Source: Auanema rhodensis
Lineage: Eukaryota; Animalia; Nematoda
NCBI GenBank assembly: GCA_964057225.1
Contig: OZ059895.1
Location: 8,680,001-8,744,000, forward strand
Direction: 5' to 3'
Length of the DNA stretch: 64,000 nucleotides
Made by a program: the position numbers and the translations under genes. This document shows positions 20,187-22,476 of this stretch, piece after piece (position 1 is the first letter of the stretch; each line of letters opens with the position of its first letter). The notes under the pieces were generated by a model that was not told the origin of the DNA, did not search any database, and saw only the letters and a program-made list of their open reading frames with translations.

Positions 20187-21001
20187 TCAAATAACATTTT
20201 TCTCAACAAGTCGACGATAAACTTCATGAATTGGTAGTCCAACGATATTCGAGAAACATCCCTGAATGCCTTTAACAAAAACTCCTCCATATTCCTGAAT
20301 GCCATAAGAACCTGCGCGTGACCTGATTTGATTCTTGAATTATCAACGTTAATATATGTAGATTAACTTACAAAGGTGAACCAGTAGCAACGTAATTTTC
20401 GATGATTTTGTCAGGAAAATCTCCAAATTCAATCATGGATTCAACACTAAATGTTTCTTCAGTTCCATCAGAATATGCAATTGATACTCCGGAATAGCAC
20501 GCATGAGTATTTTTGCGAAGTCTGAAAACTTCAATTATACTTTTAACTATTTAGATAATTTTTTCAAAATTGAAATAAGTTCGGAGAATAGGTAATTTTA
20601 ACCTTTTCAATGTAGCAATTGCGTCAGAACTATCAAGTGGTTTTCCAATTATCTCATTTTCAAAATAGATTACCGTGTCGCTTGCAATAACCGCGTCATA
20701 TGGTTCCTAATCAAATATCTCAAGTATATCTTGTCCGCAAATGAAACTGACCGGATCTTTACGTAGGCTCTCAAGAACAGCTTGAAGTTTACCATTAGCA
20801 GTTTTCTCTACAAATTCCCTAACGGGCAGTGTTTTGGGAAGATTTTCTTCGAAATCAGAAACTTTGACAATAGGATCAATACCCTGAAAATTAATAAATA
20901 TGATTTGAGTAGTGTATTTTCAGACTTACAATACTCCTAAGGAGGCGAAGGCGGTTCACAGAGGAAGAGGCTAAAATAATAACTGGTTTCGAAGTAGACA
21001 T
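20187..21001 (-). CDS. dod-18: Maf/ASMTL-N family nucleoside triphosphate pyrophosphatase, 5 exons
   Basis: [32 protein letters not shown]...IIGKP, AGSYGIQ, NIVGLP. Confidence 0.92.
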
Positions 21002-22476
21002 GGCGGTCGTAGCTGGAATGCCTTCTGTATCAATTGATATGATGTTTAGGCGAATTCTCGTTTTGAGTAAGCTGTTCACCAAAAGTTGGGGTCACCCAAA
21101 AACTTTGCGACAGTAAGCCCTGAAACTAAAAGCATCAATTGATATTTTGGATTACCAGATTATCGAAACATCGTCAAGAAGTCATGTCGCAAAGAGGAAT
21201 TCAATCAGTTTTGCAATCCATGAATATAGAACTAATTATAGAACAGGTGAATATTCTAATATTTTACTTCAATATTGGTTAATTGAAGGAAAAAGTTAAA
21301 AATGGGGTTAGATATCTGGAGGGAAAATTCAAAAGCCCTCACGCTATTTTATACCCCGAACAAATGCCAGAACCTATAGGATGGGCTCGTTGGAAAGGTA
21401 TTTTTCCCCAGCATGAACGTCGTGGACTTTGTATTCATCTAGCTGGTACAGGTGATCATTCATATGTCCGGTAAGAAAATGAAATTTGGAATAATCATTG
21501 AATAAACTATAGACGAGAAATGGGTTTTGTGAATGACATGCTCAAAGAGCACAAAACTGCTGCGATTTTAATACAAAATCCTTTTTATATGGACAGAAGG
21601 CCATCTCATCAATATCGGTAAGAATATACTTCACATATCTACTCATATGTTTCGTATTAATTCAGATCATCATTACTTAATGTATCAGACCTTTTCGTAA
21701 TGGGTGCTGCACTCATGGCCGAATGCAATTATTTGCTGAGTTGGGCTAAAAACGAAGGTTATGGACCATTAGCTATATCAGGAGTAAGAAAGGCGCTTTA
21801 AATGATGCACGTTACCAATTTATTAAAGGTGTCCATGGGTGGTTTCATGGCTTCTTTAGCAGGCTCGAATATGACTTTTCCTGTTGGCATTATTCCAATC
21901 CTATCTTGGACAACGGCCAGTTTACCGTACACGAGAGGTAAAAAAACGTGATTAATATAAATAATTTGTTCTGAAGGTGCCATTGCCGGATCAATAAACT
22001 TTGAGGAATTGGAAAAACAAATTGCGGATCCCCATTATATTTCAAAAATCAAAAGCATTCCAAACACTGATTGGGTTGATCAAATGGTAAGACATTTACC
22101 ATAAAATATCACTCAGTTGTAATTACAGCACGAAAGATCGGCTAAAAATGGTAAAAGCTTAGCGTACAACTTTATGTGTATATTAATGGATGAATTCACC
22201 TTACTTAGCAATTATCCATTACCTTTGGACACCTCATTGTGTAAAGCGATAGTAGCAGAAAAAGATGCCTATGTATTGAGAGATGGAGCACCTCATTTTC
22301 AAGTGAGAATATTATATTCGAATCTTAACATATATATATATATATTTGTTTAGGATGTATGGCCTGGTATGAGCCTTGATGTTATGCCCGGAGTTGGTCA
22401 TGTCGAAGCCTATTTGACAGGTCATGCAATGTGGAGGAATGAAATCGCTGAAGTCATGAGAAGGACTCCAGTTTAG
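21000..22476 (+). CDS. ABHD18/C4orf29 (DUF2048) alpha/beta hydrolase, multi-exon
   Basis: [50 protein letters not shown], nucleophile elbow GVSMGG, MDEFT, GHVEAY. First ATG after the TTTTCAG at 20917-20923; a second in-frame ATG at 21018 is also possible. Confidence 0.9.

Follow-up and report, generated by a model that had tools for sequence, protein, structure and literature searches.

The window considered here is a stretch of 64,000 nucleotides (nt) from the nematode Auanema rhodensis (GenBank assembly GCA_964057225.1, contig OZ059895.1, positions 8,680,001 to 8,744,000 of the forward strand); all coordinates below are those of the window unless another sequence is named. It contains an orthologue of dod-18, a Maf-like gene, on the minus strand and an orthologue of ABHD18 on the plus strand; these two protein-coding genes do overlap head to head, with zero intergenic DNA between them. 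Read directly from the sequence, one CATG palindrome holds both starts, the minus-strand ATG at 21001..20999 and the plus-strand ATG at 21000-21002. The AT of this palindrome is common to the ATGs of Maf and ABHD18, and the coding sequences accordingly overlap by 2 nt. An initial annotation of the sequence had proposed this shared start without any intergenic space, and both the gene models and the splicing of the RNA bear it out; the coordinates it gave for the CATG, the first introns and the acceptor motifs were all found to be correct when the sequence was read again.

The pair is identified by homology as a Maf-like nucleotide pyrophosphatase and an ABHD18 hydrolase orthologue, which belong to unrelated families. 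The Pfam and homology queries were single exons and orthologue identifiers, not the full-length spliced proteins of the window. Against Pfam Maf (PF02545; gathering cut-off 27), exon 5 of the minus-strand gene scored 44.4 bits and exon 4 scored 24.4 bits, and two exons of the plus-strand gene scored 46.5 and 35.6 bits against Pfam ABHD18 (PF09752; cut-off 21). The orthologues are named ABHD18 and CBR-DOD-18 or Maf, and at full length they contain PF09752 and PF02545, respectively. The ABHD18 protein is 82% identical to protein P0032 of Auanema sp. JU1783.

Both gene models are right, with introns removed where the reading of the sequence placed them, and the two RNAs overlap. The evidence comes from four runs of one RNA study, which contain the locus in the form of assembled contigs; these were placed on 19800-22800. 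All 12 introns of the pair, that is, both first introns and ten others, are spliced out in the contigs of the four runs, which marks the contigs as assemblies of RNA. Joints within contigs mark every Maf intron (4/4, appearing as CT..AC) and seven of the eight ABHD18 introns (GT..AG); the eighth ABHD18 intron lies inside a skipped repeat, yet it is absent from the contig pieces. In each of the four runs a single contig bears both spliced mRNAs and is continuous across 20929-21112. The contigs of Logan assemblies are made by joining 31-letter words that overlap (k = 31), and a merged contig therefore means that the RNAs of the two genes overlap by ~30 nt or more. The transcripts of this divergent pair thus overlap at their 5' ends, as those of a head-to-head antisense pair do, and both spliced mRNAs occur together in the same whole-animal RNA samples. 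The features of the junction are collected in Table 1.

Table 1. Features of the Maf/ABHD18 junction in A. rhodensis (window coordinates).
Feature	Position	Strand	Remarks
Maf-like (dod-18 orthologue) coding sequence	20187..21001	-	197 amino acids; 5 exons: 21001-20930, 20883-20752, 20706-20603, 20521-20372, 20322-20187
ABHD18 orthologue coding sequence	21000..22476	+	373 amino acids; 9 exons: 21000-21112, 21159-21246, 21289-21470, 21513-21617, 21666-21783, 21829-21937, 21977-22086, 22129-22302, 22354-22476
CATG palindrome with both start codons	20999..21002		Read directly; same layout in JU1783 and in RNA contig L011
Maf intron 1	20884..20929	-	46 nt, GTAAGT...TTTTCAG; GTAAGT is directly followed by CTGAAAA, the antisense of the plus-strand acceptor
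ABHD18 intron 1	21113..21158	+	46 nt, GTAAGC...ACCAG; starts GTAAGCC, then CTGAAA CTAAAA
TTTTCAG, predicted SL1 (spliced leader 1) trans-splice acceptor of ABHD18	20917..20923	+	Cut 20923|20924; abuts the antisense Maf donor ACTTAC (20924-20929)
Predicted ABHD18 leader	20924..20999	+	76 nt, inferred by analogy with the 65-nt leader of L011
Second in-frame ABHD18 ATG (MPSVS...)	21018..21020	+	Alternative start
TTTCAG (21125-21120) and TTTTAG (21131-21126), candidate Maf trans-splice acceptors	21120..21131	-	Best minus-strand consensus matches upstream of the Maf ATG; use unproven
CATTCCAG, weaker alternative acceptor	21013..21020	-	Inside ABHD18 exon 1, 11 nt upstream of the Maf ATG; hypothetical

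Upstream of the ABHD18 AUG, inside the first intron of the Maf gene, the plus strand reads TTTTCAG|A, which agrees with the consensus UUUUCAG/R of trans-splice acceptors and has no donor upstream of it on the same strand. An 18-nt block comprising this acceptor and the antisense Maf donor, TTTCAGACTTACAATACT, is invariant between A. rhodensis and Auanema sp. JU1783, whereas the remainder of the intron has diverged. Antisense TTT[CT]AG is present within the first introns of both genes and in none of the ten other confirmed introns. The cis introns of the pair are 39-51 nt long, except one of 81 nt, and most of them end in weak acceptors (CCAG, GAAG, ATAG, AAAG, ACAG); just 2 of the 12 end in TTTCAG, so that a full TTTTCAG is not trivial background at this locus. 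The predicted leader of the ABHD18 mRNA would open with 6 nt from Maf intron 1, continue as the exact antisense of Maf exon 1 as far as the Maf start codon, and close with the C of CATG. The plus strand is free of ATG from 20903 to 20999, and the nearest upstream ATG, at 20900, lies just past the proposed acceptor. Since such a leader is the antisense of a coding exon, Maf exon 1 must stay without CAT triplets.

Sites of the same kind recur in other nematodes. Maf intron 1 has a plus-strand TTTCAG in Ancylostoma duodenale, Steinernema carpocapsae and Haemonchus contortus, at 7 nt, 16 nt and ~35 nt beyond the antisense donor, respectively, and in Caenorhabditis brenneri the plus strand of this intron carries a T-rich CTAG at a distance of 15 nt. 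The most direct evidence comes from an RNA contig of an ascarid-like nematode (L011), whose ABHD18 is 75.5% identical to the Ascaris protein. This contig begins with the last 10 nt of SL1, followed by GCAC, ACTTAC, the antisense of the complete Maf exon 1 (MRIVLASGSQHRLALLRQI) and CATG (75-78), and its leader is 65 nt long. L011 is thus an example, from a distantly related species with the same layout, of an ABHD18 mRNA with SL1 trans-spliced to it inside Maf intron 1 and with the antisense of Maf exon 1 as its leader. In a strongylid RNA contig (L010), which carries no SL, the ABHD18 transcript extends >120 nt into Maf intron 1; this fits a start site of ABHD18 within the partner gene. From the conservation of the site together with the SL1-bearing contig, a trans-splice acceptor of ABHD18 inside Maf intron 1 is well supported.

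A count of the arrangement within the window is of less help. The composite pattern, defined as a donor followed by an antisense acceptor within 0-3 nt, was observed twice in 128 kb against ~0.76 expected (P ~0.17), which is not significant alone, and the count was rejected as a significance test because it is weak. The unusual point is that both matches are the first-intron donors of the Maf/ABHD18 pair. The weight of the evidence lies with the recurrence of the plus-strand site across species.

The neighbourhood bears on how the two genes can be transcribed. On one side, a plus-strand gene, taken as an MSK-type kinase from its synteny with the JU1783 locus (L001), ends at ~20068, and the minus-strand Maf gene ends at ~20106-20117; the two are convergent with almost no spacer. 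On the other side, ABHD18 ends at ~22569 and a minus-strand cytochrome c1 gene ends at ~22599, again convergent with almost no spacer. Three of the four runs have a single contig that joins the transcripts of ABHD18 and cytochrome c1, an indication that their 3' ends overlap. An operon, which in nematodes would have a downstream gene on the same strand at a distance of ~100 nt, was considered and rejected: within 19800-22800 the genes alternate in orientation, being convergent or divergent, and none are in tandem. As both flanking genes are convergent, neither Maf nor ABHD18 belongs to an operon and both are monocistronic. With no intergenic DNA between them and convergent neighbours outside, each gene has to be transcribed from inside the other; the leader of one mRNA, and probably of both, must be copied from inside the partner gene, and at least that of ABHD18 has to be antisense to the first coding exon of its partner.

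The reading that we favour, with a probability of about 0.72, is that of a head-to-head pair in which ABHD18 is SL1 trans-spliced inside Maf intron 1. The ABHD18 pre-mRNA would start at some point inside the Maf gene and be SL1 trans-spliced at TTTTCAG|A (20923|20924), beside the intron-1 donor of Maf on the opposite strand. The mature mRNA would then carry a 76-nt AUG-free leader antisense to Maf exon 1 and would be translated from the first AUG, at 21000. Trans-splicing would throw away the upstream part of the primary transcript, and because this part is discarded, the promoter can sit inside the partner gene. The extent of coding overlap has drifted, from 2 nt here to a maximum of ~90 nt among strongylids, with the appearance of in-frame AUGs in the antisense leaders.

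Several observations weigh against this reading. No SL-to-gene junction was seen in A. rhodensis, where the material consisted of assembled contigs only; these have no loose ends and cannot show 5' ends, and an assembler normally trims off short SL tips. The merged contig is accounted for by the ABHD18 leader alone and is silent on the 5' end of Maf. Maf intron 1 also contains a TATA-like element (AATAAATA, ~20893-20900; TAATAAATAT, 20891-20900) that could drive a capped ABHD18 start; it lies ~25-30 nt upstream of 20924, and the capped start would fall near 20924. For L011, GCAC is presumed to be intronic and preceded by AG. The overlap is, moreover, not obligatory: in Mesorhabditis belari 127 nt separate the annotated ATGs, that of ABHD18 being preceded at 14 nt by an ordinary TTTTAG, and Pristionchus pacificus has no Maf gene within 4 kb of ABHD18. 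Another objection would be that the ABHD18 mRNA begins downstream of 21000, or that translation begins at 21018, in which case the shared start would be a coincidence of annotation. The NCBI annotation of the JU1783 orthologue does use the downstream ATG (L001 3001), and the N-terminus of human ABHD18 aligns about equally well with a start at 21018. Nevertheless, the N-terminus read from ATG 21000 (MAV..) recurs as an in-frame extension in JU1783 (MAVITS), in the species of L011 (MAVMG) and in Ancylostoma (MAGVSG); the AUG of CATG is the first AUG of the SL1-bearing mRNA in L011; and ATG 21000 has a purine at -3 and a G at +4. A start beyond 21000 is thus highly improbable. ATG 21000 is favoured ahead of 21018 as the predicted start of ABHD18, because the MAV N-terminus is kept and no AUG comes between the predicted acceptor and 21000.

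For the 5' end of Maf, several candidates compete. The Maf leader has to be antisense to exon 1 of ABHD18 and may start at 21119/21125, at a weaker acceptor within exon 1, or at a cap. In a fully symmetric arrangement, Maf would also be SL trans-spliced within the partner's first intron, at TTTCAG (21120|21119) or TTTTAG (21126|21125) in ABHD18 intron 1; both leaders would then be exact antisense copies of the partner's first exon, with a mutual overlap of ~200 nt. These intronic motifs are the best minus-strand matches and lie 1 nt from the antisense donor, as a mirror of the plus-strand site. The 131 nt upstream of the Maf ATG are free of ATG, the nearest (21135) lying just past the motifs, which leaves 118-124 ATG-free nt after them, and the His codon of the WGHP motif in ABHD18 exon 1 is CAC, which avoids an antisense ATG, whereas JU1783 has CAT. 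An antisense CAG 0-2 nt from the donor is found in JU1783 and Steinernema as well. However, JU1783 has AAACAG in place of TTTCAG, its flanking intron is not conserved, and a leader from the intronic site would there contain two upstream ATGs with short open reading frames. The minus strand of ABHD18 intron 1 in C. brenneri has no AG at all, and the Maf RNA contigs that were retrieved (L003, L012-L015) are all merged with ABHD18, none of them with an SL. We therefore hold the symmetric arrangement only tentatively, at somewhat short of an even chance. It is rather doubtful that Maf is instead trans-spliced at an acceptor within ABHD18 exon 1, such as CATTCCAG (cut 21013|21012), which would give Maf a short leader and leave ABHD18 alone with a long antisense leader. 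In C. elegans the leader that follows the SL is usually short, and weak cis acceptors (CCAG, GAAG, ACAG) are tolerated in the A. rhodensis pair. A consensus minus-strand TTTCAG lies in ABHD18 exon 1 of C. brenneri (35 nt upstream of the Maf ATG) and H. contortus (56 nt upstream), and JU1783 has TTATAACAG 2 nt ahead of the Maf ATG. On the other hand, the exonic candidates in the window match TTTTCAG at just 4-5 of 7 positions, and none is found at the same position in JU1783. It is unlikely that Maf escapes trans-splicing and has a capped mRNA from a transcription start in ABHD18 exon 1 or intron 1. Genes that are not trans-spliced exist as a minority in nematodes (PMC3730108), and the species compared do not share any minus-strand acceptor position, but strong acceptor motifs lie upstream of the Maf ATG in A. 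rhodensis and in most of these species.

The initial annotation had gone further than the preferred reading, in which the trans-splice site belongs to ABHD18, and had placed reciprocal trans-splice acceptors in the two first introns. The plus-strand half of this proposal agrees with the conservation of the site and with L011, while the evidence on the minus-strand half is mixed, the motif not being conserved in JU1783, where a leader from this site would contain two upstream ATGs. Its observation that no ATG lies between acceptor and start holds on both strands (nearest at 20900 on the plus strand and 21135 on the minus strand). Its corollary, that each leader is antisense to the partner's first exon, is upheld for ABHD18 by the same conservation and contig, and a Maf leader from the intronic acceptor is unproven. 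It had also suggested a check for the same junction in other rhabditids; a plus-strand TTTCAG is found in Maf intron 1 of Ancylostoma, Haemonchus and Steinernema, but the minus-strand site is not conserved in JU1783.

The head-to-head overlap is found in nematode clades III, IV and V and is widespread in rhabditid nematodes. The gene order kinase, Maf, ABHD18, cytochrome c1 is present in Auanema sp. JU1783 and C. brenneri, and S. carpocapsae has the same four-gene order with Maf present but unannotated. The A. duodenale locus comprises Maf, ABHD18 and cytochrome c1, that of H. contortus Maf and ABHD18, and Mesorhabditis has parts of the cluster. We take the C. elegans counterparts to be dod-18 (C54G4.6) and its neighbour C54G4.7, beside rskn-2 and cyc-1; in the literature searched, no paper was found on the Maf/ABHD18 pair or on C54G4.6 / C54G4.7. 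The coding overlap is 2 nt, within the same CATG, in JU1783 (L001 2961-2964) and L011, 10-19 nt in Steinernema and 50-92 nt in strongylids (L006 4001-4089, L007 3959-4050, L010 165-217, L013 ~1700-1800). The Caenorhabditis pair differs from that of A. rhodensis in its overlap of 14 nt rather than 2 nt and, likely, in having the Maf acceptor in ABHD18 exon 1. RNA contigs that merge the two genes also occur in Caenorhabditis and a strongylid. Position 1 of a Caenorhabditis RNA contig (L004) is exactly the boundary of Maf exon 1 and intron 1, as expected of a branch in the assembly graph between spliced Maf mRNA and RNA that continues into the intron.

The components of this arrangement, namely SL1 trans-splicing, divergent genes and antisense overlap, are ordinary; their combination and its wide phylogenetic spread are unusual. 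As in SL1 trans-splicing of other nematode pre-mRNAs, ABHD18 has a consensus acceptor without an upstream donor on the same strand, a predicted leader free of AUG and a promoter that would be uncoupled from the start codon, and in a relative the corresponding site carries the SL1 tail (L011). Unlike the usual case, the predicted acceptor sits not in intergenic DNA but in the first intron of a gene on the opposite strand, fused to its donor, and the leader would be complementary to a coding exon. Bidirectional promoters of C. elegans have paired divergent transcription start sites 60-160 bp apart (PMC3730108), and the spacing of divergent start sites peaks at 120 bp (PMC3730107). The pair resembles them in that two divergent protein-coding genes lie in close contact and are probably served by a single compact regulatory region. 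However, those promoters have a shared intergenic region, back-to-back starts and transcripts that do not overlap; the Maf/ABHD18 pair has no intergenic region, and its transcription start sites must therefore be crossed, each downstream of the partner's start codon. As read from the sequence, the start codons themselves overlap, which places the pair outside the classical definition of a bidirectional promoter. Like the head-to-head (5'-5') antisense pairs of mammals, plants and yeast, it consists of two opposite-strand protein-coding genes with transcripts that overlap at the 5' end. It differs from these in that the coding sequences touch or overlap, in that trans-splicing reconciles the overlap with translation, and in that the arrangement is kept across nematode clades.

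If this account is true, the locus is a natural example in which SL trans-splicing abolishes the need for DNA between divergent genes, and a 46-nt intron accommodates one gene's acceptor directly beside the other gene's donor. With their promoters crossed and their leaders complementary, Maf and ABHD18 could then be coupled in expression or exclude each other, by transcriptional interference or by duplex RNA across both start codons; that mutual interference or double-stranded RNA arises over the start codons is speculation. It is quite improbable that the 5' sense-antisense overlap is a selected regulatory device rather than a by-product of genome compaction. On that view, the overlap would also have let each gene gain N-terminal coding sequence from the antisense reading of a conserved exon of its partner. 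An example is seen in strongylids, where the N-terminal extension of ABHD18, MSLSRLGDWLAS, is the antisense reading of a conserved Maf motif, VLASQSPNRLKLM. It may therefore be Maf, and not ABHD18, that keeps this extension conserved. Because the pair is present in distantly related nematodes, among them the genus of the model organism, it provides a defined locus for studies of promoter position, of interference by crossed transcription and of the growth of the overlap (2 to ~90 nt).

The locus also exposes systematic annotation errors in several public genomes. ABHD18 of JU1783 apparently starts 13 codons late (L001 2962-3001), Maf of C. brenneri appears truncated to 135 amino acids (L002 1840-3014), Maf of A. 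duodenale appears to have been split into two genes (L007 1-4050), and that of S. carpocapsae (L009 2826-4010) is the one missing from its annotation. The probable cause is that gene predictors avoid overlaps between opposite strands; in WormBase curation, an overlap of coding exons in opposite sense is scored as an anomaly to be checked (PMC3092607).

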